Assembly (NCBI RefSeq): GCF_000142905.1
Contig: NW_013657647.1
Span: 303,828 to 367,827, forward strand
Reading direction: 5' to 3'
Origin: Thecamonas trahens ATCC 50062
Taxonomy: Eukaryota > Protista > Apusomonadida
Length of the DNA: 64,000 nucleotides
Within the stretch, counting starts at the first letter, position 1. Each line of letters opens with the position of its first letter. Shown in pieces: positions 3,267-41,087 of the stretch. The notes below the pieces were generated by a model that did no database searches, had not been told where the DNA came from, and saw nothing but the letters and a program-made list of their open reading frames with translations. The translations under genes were made by a program, and so were the position numbers.

Positions 3267-4330
3267 CGATCCCCATCCCCATCATACCCATACCCATCAT
3301 ACCCATCCCCATCATCCCCATCCCCATCATACCCATACCCATCATCCCCATACCCATCATCCCCATACCCATCATCCCCATACCCATCATCCCCATCCCC
3401 ATCATACCCATCCCCATCATACCCATCCCCATCATCCCCATANNNNNNNNNNNNNNNNNNNNNNNNNNNNNNNNNNNNNNNNNNNNNNNNNNNNNNNNNN
3501 NNNNNNNNNNNNNNNNNNNNNNNNNNNNNNNNNNNNNNNNNNNNNNNNNNNNNNNNNNNNNNNNNNNNNNNNNNNNNNNNNNNNNNNNNNNNNNNNNNNN
3601 NNNNNNNNNNNNNNNNNNNNNNNNNNNNNNNNNNNNNNNNNNNNNNNNNNNNNNNNNNNNNNNNNNNNNNNNNNNNNNNNNNNNNNNNNNNNNNNNNNNN
3701 NNNNNNNNNNNNNNNNNNNNNNNNNNNNNNNNNNNNNNNNNNNNNNNNNNNNNNNNNNNNNNNNNNNNNNNNNNNNNNNNNNNNNNNNNNNNNNNNNNNN
3801 NNNNNNNNNNNNNNNNNNNNNNNNNNNNNNNNNNNNNNNNNNNNNNNNNNNNNNNNNNNNNNNNNNNNNNNNNNNNNNNNNNNNNNNNNNNNNNNNNNNN
3901 NNNNNNNNNNNNNNNNNNNNNNNNNNNNNNNNNNNNNNNNNNNNNNNNNNNNNNNNNNNNNNNNNNNNNNNNNNNNNNNNNNNNNNNNNNNNNNNNNNNN
4001 NNNNNNNNNNNNNNNNNNNNNNNNNNNNNNNNNNNNNNNNNNNNNNNNNNNNNNNNNNNNNNNNNNNNNNNNNNNNNNNNNNNNNNNNNNNNNNNNNNNN
4101 NNNNNNNNNNNNNNNNNNNNNNNNNNNNNNNNNNNNNNNNNNNNNNNNNNNNNNNNNNNNNNNNNNNNNNNNNNNNNNNNNNNNNNNNNNNNNNNNNNNN
4201 NNNNNNNNNNNNNNNNNNNNNNNNNNNNNATACCCATCCCACTCATACCCATACCCACTCATCCCCATCCCCACTCATCCCCATCCCCACTCATCCCCAT
4301 CCCCACTCATACCCATCCCCACTCCCTATC
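3267..4330. repeat. Simple/minisatellite repeat (CCCATC/CCCATA/CATC units) flanking an assembly gap
   Basis: Repeat visible at 3267-3442 and 4230-4330 on both sides of the N run. Confidence 0.9.
3443..4229. other. Assembly gap (N run)
   Basis: Run of N. Confidence 1.
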
Positions 4331-28035: not shown

Positions 28036-30402
28036 ATGAGCCAGAGACGGCCGTTCATGACGGCCAACATCCCGCAACGAACGCCGCTGGAAGAGACGCT
28101 TGTGGTCCATCCGACGGCTGAAGAGTTTGCTGATCCGCTGGCGTACATTGCATCGATTGCTCATGTGGGAAGAGAGTATGGCATTGTTCGCGTCGTTCCG
28201 CCGGATTCCTTCAAGCCGCCCTTTTGTTTCCCTCCGGATGCCGTCTTTCCTACTCGCTCGCAACAACTGGGTCAACTCCAGCGTCGCTCGGGTCCCTCGA
28301 CCGTCTTTCTGGACAAGATTCGTGTCTTTCATGCCGCCCGTGGTCGCTCGCTGCCTACCACTACAGAGCATGGCAAAACTCGTCTGACACTGCCCATTGT
28401 TGATGGTTCGGAACTGGATCTGTTCTCCCTCTTTCGCACCGTCGTCGCCGCTGGCGGGCCAGCTGCTCTCGATGCTGATCCGGCCGGCTGGCGCAAGCTC
28501 GCGGATACCATGGCGCTGCACTCGACGTCGGCGGCGGTAGAAATTCGCCACTGGTACGGGATCTACCTCGCTGAGTATGTCAGGGCCTACTGCACTGTGA
28601 TTGCCGCTGACAAGGCGGCGGCCCAGGAGCGGCGACGCAACAAGCGCGACCGGTCCGGCTCGGCATCCGGCTCGGCCTCTCCGCCTGGAGTCGAACCGGG
28701 CGCCAAGCGAGCCAAGGGCCTTGGCGGCGAGGTGCTGGTCAACGCACCCGCAACGGCGGCGCTGGCATCGGCCGACGGCGACGCCGGGAACGCGTGGATC
28801 AAGCTGCCGCGCGACGCCAGCGGCGCTGTGGCGCTCGACGAGCGCGCCTTTGAGCTCGAGTCTGCCAACTGCTCGGTGGCCGAGACCAAGGCTGCTGCCA
28901 AGTTTGCGTTCCGGACCGGCGGTGACTACACGCTTACCTCATTCCGGGCCATGGACGTGGAGCGGCGCGAGCGGCTGTTTGGCCGCTCGCGGTCGCTCTC
29001 GATTCCCGAGCTGGAGAGCATGTTCTGGAAGGTCATCGAGGACGGGACGATGATGATCGACGCCGAGTACGGCGCCGACCTCGACGTGCGCCAGTACGGC
29101 TCCGGGTTTCCCAAGCACGGGCCGTACGGCTCGTCGGGCTGGAACCTCAACGTCATGCCGACGCTCCCGGGCTCGCTCCTCTCGCTGCTGGAGGACGACA
29201 TTGTGGGCGTCACTATTCCGTGGTTCTACGTCGGCTCGACGCTCTCCACCTTTTGCTGGCATACCGAAGACAACTACCTGTACTCGATCAACTACCTTCA
29301 CCTCGGCATGCCCAAGATCTGGTACGGCATCCCATCGTCGGGCGCAAGCGCGTTTGAAAACGCCATCCGCACCCGCCTCTCACACGAGTTTGAGGCCGCG
29401 CCCGAGCTCATCCACCACCTCACCACCCAGATGTCGCCGTTTGAGCTCCGCGACGCCGGCGTCCCGGTCTACCGCACCACCCACCATCCGGGCCAGTTTG
29501 TCATCACCTTTCCGCAGGCCTACCACGCCGGCTTCAACGCTGGCTTCAACGCCGCCGAAGCCGTCAACTTTGCCCTCCCTGACTGGCTCCCGTTTGGCTA
29601 CTCGGCCATTCTCAAGTACGCGCCCATCAAACGCGAGCCGATCTTTGCCTTTGAGCATGTCGCCCTCAAGGTCGCCGTTCGCCATGGCCGCGCCCTCTCG
29701 CTCAAGCAGCGGGCCATGCTCGCCGAAATCCTCGACGACGCTGTCTCTCGCGAGGAGCGGCTGCGAGAGGCCGTTGTCGCCGAGCTCGATACTGACTTTG
29801 TTCTCGACTACGGCCCGACCAACGTCCTTTTCACCTCGCCGGCCCTCGCCTCGCGCTCCAAGCCGGCCCAGGATCCCGACGACGAGGAGTTTTGCTCTAT
29901 CTGCAAGCGCTTTGTCCCGTTCTCGCTCGTTTACTGCGGCACAAACTCGCGGGTCATCTGCCCCGAGCACCACTCGTTCTCCAGCCACCCGTTCAAGCAG
30001 CCGGTCGCCCGCTATGCCATTGCTGACCTCAAGCGCGTCGTCGCCTCGCTCCGCGACACGCCTGCTGATGCTGCTCATCGCGCCGCCGTGGCTGCCGAGG
30101 CCGAGGTTGACGCTAATGCTGTTGCTGTGGCTGCAACCAGTGACGGGCTCAAGCCCATGGCTGGCGTCAAGCCCGAGCCAGAGGCCAAGACTGCTTTGCC
30201 GGAGCACACTGCTACAGGCAGTCTGGCGCCGATGGACCTCGCTCTGGCGTCGGCTCGCTCTCCTCCTTCGCCGCCCCTCCAGTCCCAGCCGGCACCTGCG
30301 CCGACGTCTCCACCTGCACCTGCGCAAGCGCCAGCGGTCATGCAGGCGCCCAAGGCCTCTGGGCATCCCACGCTTGTACCAAGCATCATCGACATCAAAT
30401 AA
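28036..30402 (+). CDS. KDM5/JARID1-like histone demethylase (JmjN-ARID-JmjC-C5HC2-like; no PHD seen)
   Basis: PTAEEFADPLAYI..YGIVRVVPP; LDLFSLFRTV..GG..W; EYGADL; FCWHTEDN; FPQAYHAGFNAGFN. Confidence 0.92.
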   Translation: MSQRRPFMTANIPQRTPLEETLVVHPTAEEFADPLAYIASIAHVGREYGIVRVVPPDSFKPPFCFPPDAVFPTRSQQLGQLQRRSGPSTVFLDKIRVFHAARGRSLPTTTEHGKTRLTLPIVDGSELDLFSLFRTVVAAGGPAALDADPAGWRKLADTMALHSTSAAVEIRHWYGIYLAEYVRAYCTVIAADKAAAQERRRNKRDRSGSASGSASPPGVEPGAKRAKGLGGEVLVNAPATAALASADGDAGNAWIKLPRDASGAVALDERAFELESANCSVAETKAAAKFAFRTGGDYTLTSFRAMDVERRERLFGRSRSLSIPELESMFWKVIEDGTMMIDAEYGADLDVRQYGSGFPKHGPYGSSGWNLNVMPTLPGSLLSLLEDDIVGVTIPWFYVGSTLSTFCWHTEDNYLYSINYLHLGMPKIWYGIPSSGASAFENAIRTRLSHEFEAAPELIHHLTTQMSPFELRDAGVPVYRTTHHPGQFVITFPQAYHAGFNAGFNAAEAVNFALPDWLPFGYSAILKYAPIKREPIFAFEHVALKVAVRHGRALSLKQRAMLAEILDDAVSREERLREAVVAELDTDFVLDYGPTNVLFTSPALASRSKPAQDPDDEEFCSICKRFVPFSLVYCGTNSRVICPEHHSFSSHPFKQPVARYAIADLKRVVASLRDTPADAAHRAAVAAEAEVDANAVAVAATSDGLKPMAGVKPEPEAKTALPEHTATGSLAPMDLALASARSPPSPPLQSQPAPAPTSPPAPAQAPAVMQAPKASGHPTLVPSIIDIK

Positions 30403-31114: not shown

Positions 31115-31214
31115 NNNNNNNNNNNNNNNNNNNNNNNNNNNNNNNNNNNNNNNNNNNNNNNNNNNNNNNNNNNNNNNNNNNNNNNNNNNNNNNNNNNNNN
31201 NNNNNNNNNNNNNN
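31115..31214. other. Assembly gap (100 N), within a probable 5' intron (GTATGT 30645 .. CAG 31533)
   Basis: N run; CTAAT branch-like motif at ~31502 before CAG|ATG. Confidence 0.9.
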
Positions 31215-31533: not shown

Positions 31534-34500
31534 ATGGAGCAGGTTATTGAGTCGCTGGCCGAGTCCATCTCGCAGCTTACGTCGTATGTGCTCTCGCTTG
31601 CCGAGGCTAATGCGGAGCCGCCGCCGAACCTGCCGGAGAACGGGTCGAACGTGACCAAGGTGGCGAACATTCTGGTGCAGGTCGCGCACCAGACGGCAAC
31701 GGCGTTTAAGGACTACCCGGACGTGCAGGCTGAGATCGACTCGGAGGCTGACAAGGTCGGGCAGTTTGTGACGAACCTCGGTGACGCGCTCAACAACATT
31801 GTGGTTGCCGCCGATCGTGCTGGGGCGTACAAGACGCTACTGGGCGCGTGCAAGGCTATTGCCACGGGCACGTGCTACCTGCTCATTCTGGTGTACGGTG
31901 CGCGGACCAAGGCGATTCTCATCAAGGCGCAGCAGGCCAAGTCGTCGCTCGCCGACTACCGCACGCACGTAGTCAAGGACGCGCCATCCAACGAGCTGGT
32001 CACCGGCGTGCAGGACATCACCAACGAGATGGGCTATCTCGCAGCACTGGTTGCTGCTGCTGCAAAGGAGGCGACTGACGAGGACCAGAAGGCTATGCTG
32101 GCGGGTCACACCCAGAAGATTGCCGGCTCGCGGCAGAACTCGATCAACGTGGCCAACGGGTGGCTGCAGGCGCCGGCTGACGAGGCCGCGCATGCTGCGC
32201 TTAAGCAGGACTGCGACGACCTCGAGGCTCTCATCGACGCGCTCATTGCGGACCTGACACCCGATTCGGAGACGGATGCCAACGCGCAGCTGCTGGCGGT
32301 TTTCCAGGGCGCGCAGGCGAACCAGAACGAGCGCGACCGGGCCGCCAAGGCCAACGAGGCTGCCGCCCGCGACCTCAACGCGACCGGCAACCAGGGCCTT
32401 GCTGCGGGCAACCGCGTGTCGGAGAACGAGAAGCCACTGATGACTGCTGCCGGCGAGCTCGGCAAGTCGGCTGCCAAGCTCGTCAACGAGCTCAAGTCGA
32501 ACCCGGACGCGTTTGGGCCCAACGCCGAGGACTTTAAGGCCAAGCGCGATCAGTTCCGTGACGCCGGTGCGACGGCCATTGCCGGCGAGGACGACGACGC
32601 AAACCGAGCGGCCATCGAGTCTGGTGTCGGTGCCGTCGAGGCTGCAGGCGCGCGCCTCGAGGCCGCCACTGCGGCGTCGAATGCCGACCCGACGTCCGAG
32701 GCCGCCAACACCGAGGTCACCGAGGCCTCCAAGGAGCTTCAGGACGCACTCGACGCGCTCATCCGCGACGCCATCAAGCGTGAGGAAGATGCGGAGCGCC
32801 AGCGTCGCGAGGCCGCGGCTGCGGCCGAGGCTGCGGCTGCTGCCGCCCGCGCCGAGCAAGAGGCTGACGCCCATGCGGCGATCGGTCCGGCTGCAGCTGC
32901 TGCCCGCGACGCCGCCAACATGCAGGGCGCCAACTCTGCGGCGGCCGACCTTCTCAACGCAGCGGCCAAGCTCCTTGCCGACGCCGACCAGTCGGTTGCG
33001 GACGCGCACCACAACCCGGCGGCCGTCCCGCAGGATGTTGCCACCATGGAGGCCGACACGGCCGACTTTAACGACAAGGGCGCGCTGGCTGCTGCCGGCG
33101 CGACCAAGGTCAACCCTGCCGACGGTGACGCGCTGTCGGCTGCGGTGGCTGCGGTGGCTGCGGCGGCCGACGCGCACAACGCGGCGGCTTCGGCGGCGGC
33201 GGCCGACCCCAAGTCGACCGACGCGTCGAACGAGCTGACCAACGCGACTCAGTCGCTTACCGATGCTGTCGACTCGCTCGGCGCGGAGATGGAGAAGCAG
33301 CGCGCGGCTGCGGCTAAGCGTGGGCTTGACGCAGCGGCGTCAGCGGCCGAGGCCGAGGCCAGCTCGGAGCCCGAGGGCTCGGCGCTCAAGGACTTCCTCG
33401 ACGCCGGCGCGGCGCTGGGCAACACGGCGCCGTCGGCGATCGACGCTGCGCAGGCTGGCGACGCCAGCGCGGCAGCCGACGCTGCTGCAGGCGTGCAGAA
33501 CGGTGTCCAGGCCATTGTCGCCGCGGCCAAGGCTGCGGCGGCTGATGCCGACTCGCCCGAAGAGCGACGCCAGGTGGTGGCGGCGTCGGCGACGGTCTCG
33601 AACGCCGGCTCCAAGCTTGCGGACGCGACCAAGGCTGCCGGCAACACGGCACCGGGCACGGCTGAGCATACCAAGGCGCTCGCGGCGGTCAACGAGGCGG
33701 CCGAGGAGCTTGCGGCGGGCATCAACGAGCTCGCGGCGGCCGGCGCCGACAAGCACTACCGCGAGGCGCGCGATGCGCTTGAGCACGCGGCCAAGCGTGC
33801 TCAGGCTGCGGCGGACGACGCGACGCAGCACCACGAGCGTTCGCTGCTCAACGGGGCGGCGACGATTGCGTCGGACTCGGGTTCAATCCTGGACGCGTCG
33901 CACGGTGAGTCGTCGCCCGAGGCGGCGGCGCAGCTTGACGCGGACACCAAGGCGCTCAACAAGGAGGTTGTGGCGTTTGTCAACGCCGGCAAGGCTGCGG
34001 CGTCCGAGGTGACTGACCCGGACGAGGCTGCCAAGCTCAAGCACAACGTCAAGAGCGTGGCCAAGGACGCGGCGCTGGTGCTCAAGGCCCAGGGTGCGGC
34101 GGTGGCGGCGGCGGCGACTGCGGCCAACGCGCCGGGTACCGAGGGCGACGCCGCGGCGCTTGCGGCCAAGAACGAGGTCAACCAGAAGATGAAGGACCTC
34201 GCGCAGGCGATCGAGGACATGGCCGCCGACGCCGAGGCCAAGCGCCAGGCCGAGGCCATTCGCCGCGCCACCAAGGCGCGGACCCAGGGCCACGGCGAGG
34301 AGCTGCTCGGCCTCCGTGAGGCTATCCAGGCTGCCGGCGCGGCGGGCGACTCGGCTAACGCTGCCGACTCGTCGTCCAAGATGCGCGAGGCCATCGAGGA
34401 GCTTGCGGACATCTCGCCCGACTACCAGCGCAAGGCTGCACTCCGCGACGCGGCGGCCAAGCTTGGCGAGGCTGGCGCATCGGGCGACGCGGCGGCGATG

Positions 34501-37500
34501 GCAACCGCGGCCAACACGGCGCTTGCCACGGCGGCGACCGACGCGGCGGCGGCGGATCTCGGCGACGAGGCGGCCAAGGCTGGCAACGCGGCTGACGCTG
34601 CGGGCGCTAGCACGCCAATCGGCAAGCTGCTGGATGCGGCCAAGAACGTGGCCAAGTCGGGCGCAAACCTTGCGTCAGACGCCAAGTCGCACCCGGAGAA
34701 CGTGCCTGCTGACGTGGCGGCGCTGGAGAACGCCAACGGCGTGCTCGACGCGGCGGCCGAGGTCGCACGCGACGCACTCGCCGCCGGCGAAGTCGACGCG
34801 GCGGTTGTGGCCGAGGACCTTGCGGCCGTCCACGCGGCGTCGGACGCGCTTGCGGCTGCGGCCACGGCGCTGGCCAACGGCGCCACGGACGACCCGGCGC
34901 TCAACGAGGACGTGCTCCGCAAGGGCATTGCGCTTCAGGAGGCGGTGGACAAGCTCGTTGACGACGTGCGGCCGAAGAAGTCTGCGCTCGAGGAGCTCAA
35001 CGACAACGCTGACAACCTGCTCGCGGCGCTCGACAAGCTCGAGGGCTGCGTCGACCGCAAGGACGGTGCCGGCGCCGACCCGGCGACGAGCGCGGTGGTG
35101 GAGGCTGCCAAGGCGCTGGGCGTGAACCTCGACGATCTCGGGCTGACGGATGCGGCGGCGGCAGTGAACGACGGCTCTGCAGCGGTTCTCGCGTCGTCGC
35201 TCCCGTGGCAGGCCGACGTCAACGATGCGGCCAAGACCGATGCGGTCAAGGCGGCGATCGACCAGCTGCGCAAGGCGGCGAACGACGGGCGCCGCGCCGG
35301 GATGGGCGAGGCTGCCGGGCGCGACCTTGACAGCACTGGCGCACACGCCGACGAGCTCGCGGCCGATGCTGCGGGCGCGCTGCCCGCCGAGGAGTCGCGG
35401 CTGCTCGACGCCATCAAGGCGACGGCGGCGTCGGCCAAGACCTTGGTCAACGACGTGTCGGCGAACCCGGGGAGTGTCGACGCCGACGCGGCCGACCTCG
35501 ACTCGAAGGTCGACACGCTCGGCGGCGCAGTCGACGATGTGCTGGCCATCCTGGACAACCAGGGCGACAAGTCGCGGCTGCAGCAGTCGATGCCGGTGGT
35601 TCGCTCGGCGGCGGCTGGGCTCAACGAGGCGGCCAAGGCGTCTGCGGCAAACCCAGACGACGCCGAGGCGGCGAAGCAGACGGCGGCCATGGCCAAGGCG
35701 CTCAACGACGCGCTGGAGAACATGATCCGCGACGCGCGCGACCGCGCGCTGCACGCTGCCGACGCCGCCAACGCGCAGGCGCAGGACACGCTTGGTGCGC
35801 TCGGCCCGGCGGCGGACACGCTCAAGGACGGCGCGACGCCGGAGCAGATTGCGCTCCTCGACGCGACGGCTGCAGCGGCCGACCAGGCTGCAGGCCTGGT
35901 CGCCGACCACGCTGCGGGCGGTGCTGGCCTCGACGGAGCGGTCGCTGAGCTGGAGGCTGCCGCGGGCCCTGCGGCGGGTGCGGCTGATTCGGCTGCGGCG
36001 ACCGAGGTTCCGCGGGTGGTCGGCGGCGCCAAGGATGCGGCGACGAGCCTGGCGACGACGGCGGCGGCGGCCGAGGCGGCGCCAACGTCGGTGGCTGCAG
36101 CTGCAGCTGCGGCGGGCGCGGCGGGCGAGACTGCCGATGCGCTCCGCGACGTTCTGGGCGAGGTTGTGCGCCAGCAGCGTGCTGCGGCCGAGGCCGCGCT
36201 CCGCGACGAGGCTGCGGCATCGGGCGCTGCGGCGAGCTCGGTTTCGGAAGCGGACGCACCGCTGATGGAGGCCAACTCGGAGGTGGCGACCAAGGCTGCG
36301 GACCTGCTTGCGGAGATCACGTCGAACCCGAGTGGTGTGGAGGAGGCAGCCAAGGCTGTGTCCAAGGCGCTTGCGGCGTCAAACGCGGCCAACAACGAGC
36401 CGAACGACGCGGTCGACGACGCCGCGTCCGAGCTGTTGACGGCGGCCAAGAAGGTGGCTATGTCGCCGAACAACGTCGAAGCCGCAGCTGGAGTGGTCAA
36501 GTCGGGCAAGGCGCTGGCGGAGGCGCTGGCAGCGAGCCGCGAGTCCAAGCTTGCGGCCGCGGCTGCGGCGTCGGCTGCTGCGCTGGAGGACATCAAGAAG
36601 CGGCTGGACGACGCGGCGGCAGCGATCGGGACCGAGCCTGCGGGCGCGGTGGCCGCGGCTGGTGGCGCGGCGCTGGGCGGAGCCGGCGGCGACGGCGCGG
36701 TGGCCGCAGCTGCGGCTGCGCTTGGCGCGGACCTCCGGGCTTCTGGCGATAACCCGGCACTGGTCAACCTGCTTGGTGAGCTCGACTCTGCCGCGGGCGC
36801 GCTTGACAGTGCGAGCAACAACGCCGAGCGCGAGGAGGCCGGGTCGCGGCTTGCGGCTGCGATGGAGGGCCTCGCCGGGTGGAACACGCAGCGCGAGTCG
36901 GACGCGGCGCGTGACGCCCTCAACGCGGCGCTCTTTGACCTCGCTGGGTTTGACATCGACGGGCTTGGCGACCTGCTGGGCCTGGCCGGCGACCTCGGGC
37001 GTGCGCTCGGCGACCTGGTGGGCAACCTGCCCGGGATGAACCTCGCGGATGCGCAGGCCGGCGCTGATGGCATCGACGGCCTGGCCGGCGACCTCAAGGC
37101 CGAGTCGCGGGTGGTGCAGCTGGAGAAGATCAAGGACAAGGACCTCAAGAACATTGTGGCCGACGCGGTGCGGGCGATGGTCAAGGCGGCGTCAGCTGAG
37201 TCGTCGGCGGCGCGCGAGCAGGACGTACCGCAGTCTGCGGCGGCCGGGCATAAGATGGCCAAGGCCATGGCCAAGTTTGCCGAGGATCTCAAGGCGTGGC
37301 GCGAGGCCAACGCTGGCGGCGGCGAGGCCGACGCAGCTGGCGCCATCCAGGACATGGCAGCGAACCTCAAGTCGCACGCGCAGGAGTTTACCGGCGAGCA
37401 GGCGTCGGACCCGGCGGTGCTCGCAGGGCTCGAGCTGGCCGATCTCATGGCAAAGCTCGCCAAGGCTGCCAAGGAGGGCAAGGGCTCGGAGATCATTGCC

Positions 37501-37806
37501 GTGGCCAAGGCCATCTGCGTCCTCGCCAAGAAGATCGCCAAGGACGCCATCGGCATCGGCAAGACGTGCAAGGGCAACGCCCAGCGCGGCATTCAGGAGA
37601 TGGGCTCGACCATCTGTGGCGCCGCCACCGCTCTCGACACCTTCTCTACCCAGCTCAAGATCATCTCCATCTCCAAGGCTGCCATCGCCGCCTCAAACGA
37701 GGTGGATGACGCTGCCGAGTCGCAGCTCATTGCCGTGTGCATGGGCATCCAGCGCTCAGTCATGACCGCCATGGATGGTGTCGTCTCGGCCCGTCTTGTC
37801 AAGTAG
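31534..37806 (+). CDS. Giant vinculin/alpha-catenin family protein (2090 aa)
   Basis: N-terminus MEQVIESLAESISQL...ACKAIATGTCYLLIL resembles vinculin D1. C-terminus IIAVAKAI..KTC..STQLKIISISKA..SQLI matches the vinculin tail STQLKILS motif. Confidence 0.85.
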   Translation: MEQVIESLAESISQLTSYVLSLAEANAEPPPNLPENGSNVTKVANILVQVAHQTATAFKDYPDVQAEIDSEADKVGQFVTNLGDALNNIVVAADRAGAYKTLLGACKAIATGTCYLLILVYGARTKAILIKAQQAKSSLADYRTHVVKDAPSNELVTGVQDITNEMGYLAALVAAAAKEATDEDQKAMLAGHTQKIAGSRQNSINVANGWLQAPADEAAHAALKQDCDDLEALIDALIADLTPDSETDANAQLLAVFQGAQANQNERDRAAKANEAAARDLNATGNQGLAAGNRVSENEKPLMTAAGELGKSAAKLVNELKSNPDAFGPNAEDFKAKRDQFRDAGATAIAGEDDDANRAAIESGVGAVEAAGARLEAATAASNADPTSEAANTEVTEASKELQDALDALIRDAIKREEDAERQRREAAAAAEAAAAAARAEQEADAHAAIGPAAAAARDAANMQGANSAAADLLNAAAKLLADADQSVADAHHNPAAVPQDVATMEADTADFNDKGALAAAGATKVNPADGDALSAAVAAVAAAADAHNAAASAAAADPKSTDASNELTNATQSLTDAVDSLGAEMEKQRAAAAKRGLDAAASAAEAEASSEPEGSALKDFLDAGAALGNTAPSAIDAAQAGDASAAADAAAGVQNGVQAIVAAAKAAAADADSPEERRQVVAASATVSNAGSKLADATKAAGNTAPGTAEHTKALAAVNEAAEELAAGINELAAAGADKHYREARDALEHAAKRAQAAADDATQHHERSLLNGAATIASDSGSILDASHGESSPEAAAQLDADTKALNKEVVAFVNAGKAAASEVTDPDEAAKLKHNVKSVAKDAALVLKAQGAAVAAAATAANAPGTEGDAAALAAKNEVNQKMKDLAQAIEDMAADAEAKRQAEAIRRATKARTQGHGEELLGLREAIQAAGAAGDSANAADSSSKMREAIEELADISPDYQRKAALRDAAAKLGEAGASGDAAAMATAANTALATAATDAAAADLGDEAAKAGNAADAAGASTPIGKLLDAAKNVAKSGANLASDAKSHPENVPADVAALENANGVLDAAAEVARDALAAGEVDAAVVAEDLAAVHAASDALAAAATALANGATDDPALNEDVLRKGIALQEAVDKLVDDVRPKKSALEELNDNADNLLAALDKLEGCVDRKDGAGADPATSAVVEAAKALGVNLDDLGLTDAAAAVNDGSAAVLASSLPWQADVNDAAKTDAVKAAIDQLRKAANDGRRAGMGEAAGRDLDSTGAHADELAADAAGALPAEESRLLDAIKATAASAKTLVNDVSANPGSVDADAADLDSKVDTLGGAVDDVLAILDNQGDKSRLQQSMPVVRSAAAGLNEAAKASAANPDDAEAAKQTAAMAKALNDALENMIRDARDRALHAADAANAQAQDTLGALGPAADTLKDGATPEQIALLDATAAAADQAAGLVADHAAGGAGLDGAVAELEAAAGPAAGAADSAAATEVPRVVGGAKDAATSLATTAAAAEAAPTSVAAAAAAAGAAGETADALRDVLGEVVRQQRAAAEAALRDEAAASGAAASSVSEADAPLMEANSEVATKAADLLAEITSNPSGVEEAAKAVSKALAASNAANNEPNDAVDDAASELLTAAKKVAMSPNNVEAAAGVVKSGKALAEALAASRESKLAAAAAASAAALEDIKKRLDDAAAAIGTEPAGAVAAAGGAALGGAGGDGAVAAAAAALGADLRASGDNPALVNLLGELDSAAGALDSASNNAEREEAGSRLAAAMEGLAGWNTQRESDAARDALNAALFDLAGFDIDGLGDLLGLAGDLGRALGDLVGNLPGMNLADAQAGADGIDGLAGDLKAESRVVQLEKIKDKDLKNIVADAVRAMVKAASAESSAAREQDVPQSAAAGHKMAKAMAKFAEDLKAWREANAGGGEADAAGAIQDMAANLKSHAQEFTGEQASDPAVLAGLELADLMAKLAKAAKEGKGSEIIAVAKAICVLAKKIAKDAIGIGKTCKGNAQRGIQEMGSTICGAATALDTFSTQLKIISISKAAIAASNEVDDAAESQLIAVCMGIQRSVMTAMDGVVSARLVK

Positions 37807-37874: not shown

Positions 37875-40800
37875 TCACGAAGACGCCGATGATGACGAGG
37901 ACGATGACGAGGACGATGACGATGGCGATGACGACGAGGAGGAGGCGTCTGCGTATCGGTCGTGAGCGGTAAAGGTGACGCTGGTGTTGGCGCTGGTGTT
38001 GAGATAGTGGTCGGCGTAGTCGGCGGGCGGAGCGGCAAACATGGCCGATTGGGTCTTGGTACGCGAGAGGCCTGAGACGGAGAGGGTGAGGCTGCGGGTG
38101 AGGCCGGCGTCAAGGGCGCCGAGGCGTTCAGCAGCCTTGCGGGCGCGCCAGGCCCAGGCAATGCCAGCGATGCCCATGACTAGGCCTGCAATGACGCCGA
38201 GGGCGACGACGATGGAGCCGTTGCGGCGGGAACCGTGCTCGATGAGCATGATGACGCCGGCCGAGGCTGCAAAGATGGCAAAGTGGAGGCCGAGCTCGAG
38301 CAGGTTCCACACCTTTGCGCGGTACGGATGGCAGAAAGTGGCGCCGGTGAGCGAGATGGCGTAGACGATGAGAACGACGATGACCTGTGAGTAGGCAGAT
38401 CGCGAGGCAAACATGACGGCAACAACGACACAGGCCTTGCGGATGAGAACAAGGAACTCCCAGCCACGGGCGCCGAGACGGTAGGGCCTGACGAGCGAGG
38501 ACCAGATCGAGCCGGCGACGCCGACGCCGGAGCGGGTGAGATGGCGGACGCGCGAGGAGGCGTAGAGCGGAAAGATGATGCCGTAGGTGAGGGCGACGAT
38601 GGAGCCAACAACAGCGAGGGTCATCCATGCGTTGCCTTCGCTCCGGGACCAGCACTCGGTCCTAGGATCGGCGTCCATGATGGGCTTGGTCGACCCGTCG
38701 CCAGCCTTCATCCACGAGCAGTCAAAGGCCTCGAGCGATCGCGAGACAACCGGGATGTACAGGAGCGACCAGGCCTTGATGGCAAGGCGACCGATGGACT
38801 TGGCCTTGCACATGACCTTGAGGAGGAGTAGCCAGGCGAGGAGGACGATCGGAATGGCGAGGCAGAGGAGCCACTTGGTCTCGTAGGTGATGTCGGTGGC
38901 GCATTCGGGCGGCGTGGCGTCGACGTCAAAGTTGGCCGTCGCGGCAAAGGTGAGCATCTGGCGGGTTCCGCGCGAGAACTGGACGCCCTGCATGCGGCGA
39001 AAGAGACCGATGATCTGCAAGAATGACCAGAGCATGACCAAGCCCGTCCGCGGATCAGGCACAAATGCGCGGCGACGGGTGCGGCCGCTGGCGACGTCGC
39101 CGTCGATCGACTCGCTGCCCGAAGCCTGGTCATCGGACGCATGCTCCGAGCCGTGGCGGATGCGGGTCTTTTCGGAGTGCTCGATGTGGACCGAGATGGC
39201 GAGGACGATGTGTGCGATGAGGAAGATGGAGATGAGGACGATGAAGACGACAAAGACCGAGGCGATGGCGCCGGCTGAGGGGCAGGCCTTGCAGATGGAG
39301 TCGCTTGGGTAAAATGACGGGGCGCAGTCTCCGCATCCGTCGCCTTGGTAGCCCTGAGCACACGTCGAGTTGCCCGGGCAGATGTCAGGGGTCCGGCAGG
39401 CGATAAAGGCATTGGCGGTGGCAGGATCGGGCGCAAAACCCGGCAGCGAGACGCACGACGTGGCGCCGACGGCGTTGGTTGTCCCGCCGAACGGGCAGTT
39501 CAAGCAGGTGGGATCATCGATGATGCCATAGGTTCCGATGGTGCACGGCGAGCACTCGAGAGAGCCTGTTGCAGTGGTGCCGGTGGAGCCTGCGGGGCAG
39601 GTGATGCAGCGTCCGTCGGCGCCCGGCAGAGACATCCATCCACTGCCGCACACTGAGTGGATGACGAGGGTGTAAGCGTGAAAGTCCGAGTTGAACTCGA
39701 CAGTGAACGGGAGGATGACGGCTGATGACGAGCCTGGCGAGTCGGATGGTGCGTAGAGGGCCTCGGCCTCGGGCTGGAAGTTGGGGACGGTGTGGGCACC
39801 GATGGCGACGAGGGCGACGGGCGAGGCGCGAAGGGCTTCGGTGTCGATGAAGGCGCCAAAGCTATCGGTAGGTCTCGCGCGGAAGACAGCGTCAGAGATG
39901 GAGATATCGCTGGATTTGCAGGCAGCCGAGGAGGTGTCGATGGGGCAGAAGGTGTGGTCGAGGGTGTACGACGGATCGTTGTCGTAGAGAGCGAGGGTGA
40001 CGAGAGCAGCGGCGGCGTAGTCGATCGAGGCGGCAAGGAGAGTGACCTGGCCGGGCAACGACCGGGATGTCATCCAGTTTGGCACTGGGCTTGGGAGCTT
40101 GGTGGTGGGGTAGAAGCCAATGATGTGCCACTCGGTCTGCCCGTTGAGGTTGCGGGTGAGGATGAGGTCGATGACGCCGGCGTGGTCGGGATTGGCCGAG
40201 ACACCTACGACGGTGGCATCGGCGGCCGGGTAGTGGAACAGGTCTGTGACGAGGTAGTTTGCGTCGGACGAGCCATCGAGAGCAAAGGTGATGACGCGCG
40301 GAGCAGGCATCGATTGCGAGATGACGACGATACGATCGGCGGTGGCGTTGCCGACAAAGTGGATGGGCGCGCCGTCCTGCGGCCACCACAGGTTCCTGGT
40401 GCTACAGGCGGCGAGCGAGCGCGGGCACGAGACAAGAGTGAGGCCAGCAGCAGCATTGGGGTAGACGACGACGATGCGATCGCCGATGGGTGTGATGACC
40501 GGCTTGGCAGCAGGATCGGCGTGAAGCGCGTCGGGAACAACGACGGTGGCAGGCTTGGTGGCGGAGAGATCGATAAAGTTGGAGCAGACAATGCTCAGGC
40601 TAGATGGGCCAAACATGCGTGGAATAGCGAGCATGCACAGATCGACATTGTCGTTGAGCGATGTTTCAGAGCGGGCATCGGCCCAGATGGCTAGGCCCTC
40701 GTCTTGGCTTGGAACGAGGTCGGCGACGGGATTACAGACCCACACGGTCTCGAGGCTATCCGAGGGCACGCCTGGGTTGGCGCAAGTGCGATCATCGGGG

Positions 40801-41087
40801 CTGCTTGTGGTCTTGAGGACGCACACTTGATAGGTGCCGGATGCAGCGACGGCGAGGACCTGGCTCGAGTTGCGGGCGAGGGCGATGGCGGAGGGAACAT
40901 TGCCGCCGGGGAGCGGGTCGGCGCCGTCGTGGTTGATGAGCGCCTTGAGTGAGACACGGGTCGTCGTCTTGACTGGAGCAGAGGCCGGCGGCACAAAGTC
41001 CTGCAGCCAGCAAGCCTGCTGAGCCGTGGAGGAGGCGATGATGGTGGCGAGCGCGATGGCGACGGCCAGGGGGAGGAGCAGGTGCAT
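37875..41087 (-). CDS. Cell-surface multipass receptor-like protein: signal peptide, beta-rich ectodomain, Cys-rich (CPAG/ephrin-receptor-like) repeats, ~7-9 TM helices
   Basis: MHLLLPLAVAIAL signal; CITCPAGS, CSPCTIGTY, CAQGYQGDGCGDC; FLQI, PYR..WEF..LIRK and PYR..WNLLE motifs typical of protist 7TM-like families. Confidence 0.8.
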   Translation of the reverse strand: MHLLLPLAVAIALATIIASSTAQQACWLQDFVPPASAPVKTTTRVSLKALINHDGADPLPGGNVPSAIALARNSSQVLAVAASGTYQVCVLKTTSSPDDRTCANPGVPSDSLETVWVCNPVADLVPSQDEGLAIWADARSETSLNDNVDLCMLAIPRMFGPSSLSIVCSNFIDLSATKPATVVVPDALHADPAAKPVITPIGDRIVVVYPNAAAGLTLVSCPRSLAACSTRNLWWPQDGAPIHFVGNATADRIVVISQSMPAPRVITFALDGSSDANYLVTDLFHYPAADATVVGVSANPDHAGVIDLILTRNLNGQTEWHIIGFYPTTKLPSPVPNWMTSRSLPGQVTLLAASIDYAAAALVTLALYDNDPSYTLDHTFCPIDTSSAACKSSDISISDAVFRARPTDSFGAFIDTEALRASPVALVAIGAHTVPNFQPEAEALYAPSDSPGSSSAVILPFTVEFNSDFHAYTLVIHSVCGSGWMSLPGADGRCITCPAGSTGTTATGSLECSPCTIGTYGIIDDPTCLNCPFGGTTNAVGATSCVSLPGFAPDPATANAFIACRTPDICPGNSTCAQGYQGDGCGDCAPSFYPSDSICKACPSAGAIASVFVVFIVLISIFLIAHIVLAISVHIEHSEKTRIRHGSEHASDDQASGSESIDGDVASGRTRRRAFVPDPRTGLVMLWSFLQIIGLFRRMQGVQFSRGTRQMLTFAATANFDVDATPPECATDITYETKWLLCLAIPIVLLAWLLLLKVMCKAKSIGRLAIKAWSLLYIPVVSRSLEAFDCSWMKAGDGSTKPIMDADPRTECWSRSEGNAWMTLAVVGSIVALTYGIIFPLYASSRVRHLTRSGVGVAGSIWSSLVRPYRLGARGWEFLVLIRKACVVVAVMFASRSAYSQVIVVLIVYAISLTGATFCHPYRAKVWNLLELGLHFAIFAASAGVIMLIEHGSRRNGSIVVALGVIAGLVMGIAGIAWAWRARKAAERLGALDAGLTRSLTLSVSGLSRTKTQSAMFAAPPADYADHYLNTSANTSVTFTAHDRYADASSSSSSPSSSSSSSSSSSSASS

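Follow-up and report, generated by a model that had tools for sequence, protein, structure and literature searches.

A protein of 2,090 amino acids (aa) from the marine flagellate Thecamonas trahens carries a vinculin D1-type head and a vinculin tail (Vt)-type domain, connected by a rod that consists of about eleven helical bundles; at least six of these bundles share homology with talin rod domains, and the models show them as five-helix bundles. The gene lies at positions 31534..37806 on the plus strand of the 64,000-nucleotide (nt) stretch of genomic DNA that was analyzed (the window), and consists of a single complete, intronless open reading frame (ORF) that opens with an ATG at 31534 and is closed by a stop codon. 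We assign the protein to the vinculin superfamily as a divergent member with an inferred force-bearing mechanism, a reading that we hold at a probability of roughly 70%. A chain of this build would connect talin-type docking helices with actin over a long distance, bearing force and probably sensing it.

The sole relative recovered by a word-index search of 5.8 billion proteins is P0001, a protein of 2,083 aa encoded on a marine metagenome contig from Tara Oceans, which is 69% identical to the Thecamonas protein and aligns with it over the full length with few short gaps; a scan of Joint Genome Institute metagenomes for further orthologs produced 449 pattern matches, of which none was confirmed. 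P0001 begins three residues later, which supports the ATG at 31534 as the start codon. The ratio of nonsynonymous to synonymous substitution rates (dN/dS) between the two genes is 0.24 overall, with values of 0.10 for the head, 0.22-0.29 for the rod and 0.32 for the tail, all of them approximate because dS is close to 1 and thus near saturation. The protein is conserved over its whole length and under purifying selection.

Because Pfam does not recognize the protein, its membership in known families was assessed by profile comparison. The head (residues 1-245, 31534..32268) is detected only in this way: a phmmer search of the PDB with the N-terminal 300 aa gave no match, a two-sequence profile retrieved vinculin D1 as the top match (E-value 0.025, residues 4-191 against 10-195, in register), and a profile built from 21 heads of the subfamily described below matched vinculin D1 with an E-value of 2.3e-12 over the full domain (residues 5-236 against 9-240), compared with 4.5e-5 for the N domain of alpha-catenin. 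The genome also encodes a canonical vinculin, AMSG_10327, whose head is linked to this one by hhalign (E-value 1.7e-5) and by the subfamily head profile (4e-16). In the AlphaFold2 (AF2) model the head is made of seven helices, the fourth of which spans 53 residues, as in the D1 layout, where a long fourth helix is common to two four-helix bundles, and Foldseek retrieved Vh1 structures with it at template modelling (TM) scores of 0.52-0.64. A helical linker of low model confidence follows (residues 246-295, 32269..32418), where the predicted local distance difference test score (pLDDT) stays below 50 over residues 243-307 and identity to P0001 is lower.

The Vt-type domain occupies residues 1863-2090 (37120..37803), with the PDB match covering approximately 1937-2070. 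The single tail sequence already retrieves vinculin tails from the PDB at an E-value of 0.005; with a two-sequence profile they appear at 1.1e-7, nothing other than vinculin tails is found below 0.09, and no actin-binding domain of alpha-catenin is found at E-values up to 1. The STQLKII segment is located within the helix that aligns to the vinculin tail. The tail of AMSG_10327 is connected to this domain by BLASTP (34% identity, E-value 2e-6) and by a scan of the organism's own genome (1e-8), and the tail of P0001 scores 37.3 bits on the Pfam vinculin model (PF01044), whose cut-off is 38.1. The chain ends directly after the last helix, without the C-terminal extension, or arm, that AMSG_10327 has. 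Between rod and tail, at the position of the proline-rich hinge of vinculin, lies a linker rich in glycine, leucine and aspartate (residues 1791-1862, 36904..37119) that contains a single proline and is modelled at pLDDT 30-40, many of its positions being nonetheless invariant between the two orthologs; the richest 40-aa window for proline in the entire protein holds five prolines and falls inside D1. In a separate observation, this linker (36904-37119, FDLAGFDIDGLGDLLGLAGDLGRALGDLVGNL...) resembles a string of LD-like motifs. A preliminary description made from the letters of the window had proposed a vinculin-type D1 at the N-terminus, a Vt with the STQLKIIS signature at the C-terminus and the lack of a proline-rich hinge; all three proposals hold, and both termini match the vinculin family.

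The rod comprises approximately 1,600 aa that, in AF2 models of the two halves of the protein, are entirely helical and form about eleven units of approximately 140 aa, each with three short helices and one long helix; pLDDT is 70-90 in much of this region. The eleven units were cut at the loops preceding their LL.AA helices. Of these units, six (U1, U2, U6, U8, U9 and U10) are mutually homologous and in register (alignment A7), with hhalign probabilities of up to 97% and E-values down to 7e-11; among individual pairs, the probability is 97% for U1-U8, 91% for U1-U2 and 82% for U6-U8, while U3-U4 reaches 35%. Along the chain, the talin-type repeats U1 (residues 296-455) and U2 (462-612), at 32419..33369, are followed by the divergent helical bundles U3-U5 (613-1025, 33370..34608), which keep the pattern of three short helices and a long one, the talin-type repeat U6 (1026-1148, 34609..34977), the divergent and partly low-confidence U7 (1149-1280, 34978..35373), which has no significant match to the profile of the six units, the talin-type repeats U8-U10 (1281-1700, 35374..36633) and a short, divergent bundle rich in glycine and alanine, U11 (1701-1790, 36634..36903). 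BLASTP of the protein against itself returned no match at E-values below 1, and the repeats are visible by profile methods only.

A profile of the six homologous units from both species was searched against the PDB. Talin-1 R6 (2l10_A) was matched over the whole unit with an E-value of 7.7e-10. Full-length talin came up at 6e-9, mainly through residues 1236-1353, other parts of its rod matching less strongly, and three more talin rod entries, covering R3, R10 and R5, fell between 9e-5 and 0.011. For vinculin entries the E-values begin at 0.07 (0.07-0.2 for vinculin D1 and alpha-catenin, 1.3 for full-length vinculin) and unrelated helical proteins at 0.27. With talin R6 at 7.7e-10 against approximately 0.07 for vinculin, the likeness of the rod to talin is one of homology, beyond mere appearance. 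U1 by itself retrieved the same R6 entry in the whole-protein profile search (E-value 4.5e-4), and U4 aligns weakly and in register to the unit profile (0.005). The preliminary description had noted a recurring LL.AA...NP motif in repeated bundles rich in alanine and aspartate, covering approximately 1,600 aa, and had asked for the bundles to be counted and compared with those of talin and vinculin; the motif turns out to be helix A of the 140-aa repeat, aligned in register in six units, and the protein, at 29% alanine and 8.9% aspartate, has the composition reported there.

Structural superposition, which like Foldseek does not distinguish among the bundles of vinculin, alpha-catenin, talin, FAT and CCM3, is compatible with this assignment. 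With VIA-align, whose entry titles identify 2l10 as R6 and 2kvp as R10, U2 superimposes on talin R6 with Z 15.9 and a root-mean-square deviation of 2.3 over 127 residues at 21% identity; the pair U2-U3 superimposes on talin R11R12 (Z 16.4 across 253 residues), and U8 with the preceding helix on Vt (Z 16), talin R10 (Z 14.7) and talin R6 (Z 14.6, 21% identity). Vinculin, alpha-catenin and talin are the top Foldseek matches of the models.

Several results weigh against the proposed assignment. Pfam searches with the whole protein and with eight pieces of it found no match at all to the Vinculin family (PF01044), and the best of the Pfam talin models, Talin_IBS2B, reached an E-value of 0.18, which is not significant. 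The talin-type unit profile leaves five of the eleven rod units without a significant match. The AF2 models of the two halves are of low overall confidence (mean pLDDT 60 and 62); the head and the tail, the latter at pLDDT 30-55, were poorly modelled because the alignments held two sequences only. Helical-bundle matches are also generic, Z values of 14-18 being obtained for FAT, CCM3 and p130Cas as well. Finally, the alanine-rich composition could inflate the talin scores, although unrelated alanine-rich proteins do not fall below an E-value of 0.27.

The Thecamonas protein is not isolated. An exhaustive search with the head profile yielded 79 cluster representatives at E-values of 1e-3 or better, many of them proteins of 1,065-2,051 aa. 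All of the named relatives are amoebozoan and come from Vermistella (2,051 aa), Arcella (2,000 aa; one of its proteins is annotated as 'Vinculin'), Pyxidicula, Clastostelium, Clydonella, Acytostelium (1,844 aa) and Dictyostelium firmibasis (2,036 aa). Among the long relatives that were tabulated, most match the Thecamonas head and tail alike. Pfam assigned Talin_IBS2B to 11 of 21 long relatives (E-values down to 6e-18), Vinculin to seven and Talin_R4 to three, and our unit profile lands on the very stretch of the Vermistella relative that Pfam calls Talin_IBS2B. A search of the ESM Atlas with the rod led, with a best score of 0.84 that lies below the trusted level, to a Discosea cluster combining Vinculin and Talin_IBS2B, which we treat as a lead only. 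The rods cannot be aligned end to end within the subfamily, and the number of units varies with the length of the proteins (1,065-2,051 aa). The Thecamonas protein therefore belongs to a subfamily with a head-rod-tail organization and a rod of variable length.

In a quick tree of the heads, which contained neither animal vinculin nor alpha-catenin sequences, a canonical vinculin clade is set apart by a branch with 99% support, and the Thecamonas pair, on a long branch, falls outside a group of 47 amoebozoan-type heads that is supported at 96%, its own placement having only 54% support. Word-index searches with the canonical vinculin returned four and then one match, as alanine-rich words swamped the candidates. 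A protein of 1,743 aa annotated as 'Vinculin' in Balamuthia mandrillaris (P0004/P0009) falls into the canonical head clade of the quick tree and yet carries a precomputed Pfam Talin_IBS2B assignment, so talin-type bundles may occur outside the divergent subfamily as well. The characterization of the Thecamonas protein as a vinculin/talin hybrid in the preliminary description is a fair account of its architecture, but with these relatives the protein is not unique. Vinculin has been counted in the integrin adhesome of Thecamonas and Amoebozoa (10.1101/2020.04.29.069435; PMC12686525). The literature that we searched contains no account of a talin-type rod with the head and tail of vinculin.

From this domain order a mechanism can be proposed. 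The head would dock on amphipathic vinculin-binding helices, for example those of the several talins of Thecamonas, the tail would bind F-actin, and the talin-type rod would bear the load between them. Under force the rod may unfold bundle by bundle, buffering tension and exposing binding helices. With a linker rich in glycine, leucine and aspartate in place of the proline-rich hinge, partners of the VASP and SH3 type are not expected, and, the C-terminal arm being absent, the tail would more likely bind actin while neither bundling it in the manner of vinculin nor inserting into lipids. A complex prediction for head and tail scored 0.06, a value that weighs neither for nor against head-tail binding.

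Talin and vinculin are treated as separate partners: force unfolds talin and vinculin binds the exposed helices. Helix A of the rod units aligns with talin helix 606-636 and fits a relaxed form of the vinculin-binding site (VBS) consensus; a relaxed VBS-like pattern, written after the helices had been seen and hence a lead only, matches five times against 0.4 expected. A bolder and rather unlikely extension of the mechanism is that the protein constitutes a talin-vinculin system in one chain, in which tension would open the talin-type bundles and expose VBS-like first helices (LL.AA..VA.....L...A), to be bound by the D1 of further copies or of canonical vinculin, giving a self-amplifying force-sensing assembly that would predate the talin-vinculin partnership of animals. 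If so, load on one molecule would lead to the recruitment of more actin-linked molecules.

A different main role is suggested by the D. firmibasis relative, which has the same head and tail and is named 'Filament-interacting protein' in UniRef. The published filamin-interacting protein (FIP) of Dictyostelium binds the filamin rod, and its function is unknown (PMC2211301, PMC2978108); by analogy, the Thecamonas protein could be a helical filamin-binding scaffold that works in development or cortical organization rather than in substrate adhesion. We consider it improbable that this is its main role. The D. firmibasis protein is one of the remotest relatives, with E-values of 3e-10 for the head and 3e-6 for the tail when 100 sequences were searched, its equation with the published FIP comes from the database name, and no filamin-binding region has been mapped in the Thecamonas protein. 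A role of this kind would, in any case, be compatible with the force-bearing link that we favor.

The relationship to vinculin proper is clarified by AMSG_10327 (NCBI 'uncharacterized protein'), which was found in the same genome as a protein 100% identical to that entry (G000:C56, locus L006:3058-8118). At 1,697 aa it is approximately 630 aa longer than human vinculin, which it matches with an E-value of 6e-58, and it has an ortholog in the Tara data, P0003, with 69% identity. The presence of this canonical vinculin indicates that the 2,090-aa gene is a divergent paralog; the preliminary claim of a double-length vinculin is thus borne out with respect to the vinculin ends and to a length about twice that of the animal protein, but what was found is not the organism's vinculin lengthened. 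A third gene, with introns, contains a vinculin-tail-like exon on the minus strand (C19:295522-296094, L007:5523-6593) that matches PF01044 positions 649-848 in a Pfam scan with an E-value of 9e-14, and a weak head-like match was seen at C19:428313-428834.

AMSG_10327 is itself elongated: between two Pfam-vinculin stretches it has repeats of its own, each about 130 aa long and together covering approximately 800 aa, with no match to talin. It is therefore conceivable that the 2,090-aa protein, too, is a plain vinculin in which four-helix bundles of its own D2-D4 type have multiplied, its likeness to talin reflecting a common alanine-rich helical composition; vinculin and alpha-catenin are on a par with talin in the Foldseek ranking, and the unit profile has weak matches to vinculin D1 and alpha-catenin (0.07-0.2). 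We think that this is hardly the case, since talin R6 is matched over the full unit at 7.7e-10 and six distinct talin entries at 0.011 or better precede every vinculin entry, the relatives carry Talin_IBS2B (down to 6e-18) and Talin_R4, and the models give five-helix units of approximately 140 aa, not the 250-aa pattern of double four-helix bundles.

The rod could, conversely, have come from the talin side. Thecamonas has at least seven loci that combine I/LWEQ with many Talin_IBS2B repeats (C43:245942-251845, C60, C50, C12, C15, C45 and C7), and the unit profile matches two other loci of the genome, on C6 (1.2e-8) and C12 (6e-4). A protein of talin lineage could have lost its FERM head and I/LWEQ domain and gained vinculin-like ends by exon shuffling, in which case its nearest kin would be these talin-rod paralogs. 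Such an origin appears very improbable: Pfam scans find no remnant of FERM or I/LWEQ, and the same head-rod-tail layout recurs in many amoebozoan proteins, which makes the combination old and not a recent Thecamonas shuffle. For a unicellular organism, the set of talin-rod proteins of Thecamonas is unusually large.

That the sequence is an artefact, either an assembly duplication or a spurious GC-rich ORF encoding disordered low-complexity sequence, might be suspected from its 70% GC content, its alanine content, the long antisense ORFs that overlap it, a 100-N gap 320 nt upstream and the lack of the exact protein in the public collection, but this notion is refuted by the nearly gapless Tara Oceans ortholog on an independent contig and its dN/dS of 0.24, and there is no BLAST-level self-similarity, while termini and rod have specific homologs. 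Likewise, a disordered middle region or a duplication, which the preliminary description had named as grounds for giving up its proposal, is not what we see: an independent ortholog of the same length under constraint excludes both an assembly artefact and disordered filler, and the rod is folded in the models.

The upstream in-frame stretch is a CT-rich leader that contains the gap mentioned above (31115-31214, 320 nt before the start codon); a second run of N, 787 bases long, lies at 3443-4229 of the window. The exact 2,090-aa product has no entry in a collection of 15 billion proteins, and the public gene model may therefore be missing or different. The gene is flanked upstream by a JmjN-ARID-JmjC histone demethylase (28036-30402, plus strand) and downstream by a protein of 1,070 aa with an ephrin-receptor-like cysteine repeat (37875-41087, minus strand), both identified by Pfam and neither related by Pfam to adhesion.

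In the protein described here, elements of the two adhesion force sensors that are known best come together in a single conserved chain, which combines the binding head and actin-binding tail of vinculin with a talin-type rod that would unfold. With relatives in Amoebozoa and an apusomonad, it suggests that the vinculin superfamily has an old branch not described so far, and at the level of sequence it supports a common origin of talin and vinculin bundles. The protein could also serve as a natural construct for probing how force sensing depends on the length of the rod and the type of its bundles, and suggests what kind of protein the long-unexplained FIP of Dictyostelium may be.

Compared with vinculin (PF01044; human VCL; AMSG_10327), the Thecamonas protein has a D1-type head in register, a Vt-type tail with the STQLKI helix, the same order of head, rod and tail and the same all-helical bundle construction. 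It differs in being about twice as long as animal vinculin and below the Pfam threshold, in having a rod of talin-type units of approximately 140 aa instead of D2-D4, and in lacking both the proline-rich hinge and the C-terminal arm. With alpha-catenin it shares the superfamily, the N domain of the latter being a weak match to the subfamily head profile (4.5e-5), but the head is far closer to vinculin D1 (2.3e-12). The talin rod (R1-R13) resembles it in at least six homologous units, the best match being R6 and others being R3, R5, R10 and R11-R12, in five-helix bundles that are modelled as joined by long helices like those of R11-R12, and in number, about eleven bundles plus D1 and Vt being close to the thirteen of talin. 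Unlike talin, however, the protein begins with D1, Pfam scans detecting no FERM family in it, and ends with Vt, no I/LWEQ (THATCH, PF01608) being found by Pfam in the protein or, in the own-genome I/LWEQ scan, at its locus. In overall build it resembles the long amoebozoan vinculin-like proteins, that of Balamuthia included: although the Thecamonas pair stands on a long branch of its own, these proteins share with it the head, the tail, a similar length and a long helical rod in which Pfam recognizes Talin_IBS2B or Talin_R4.

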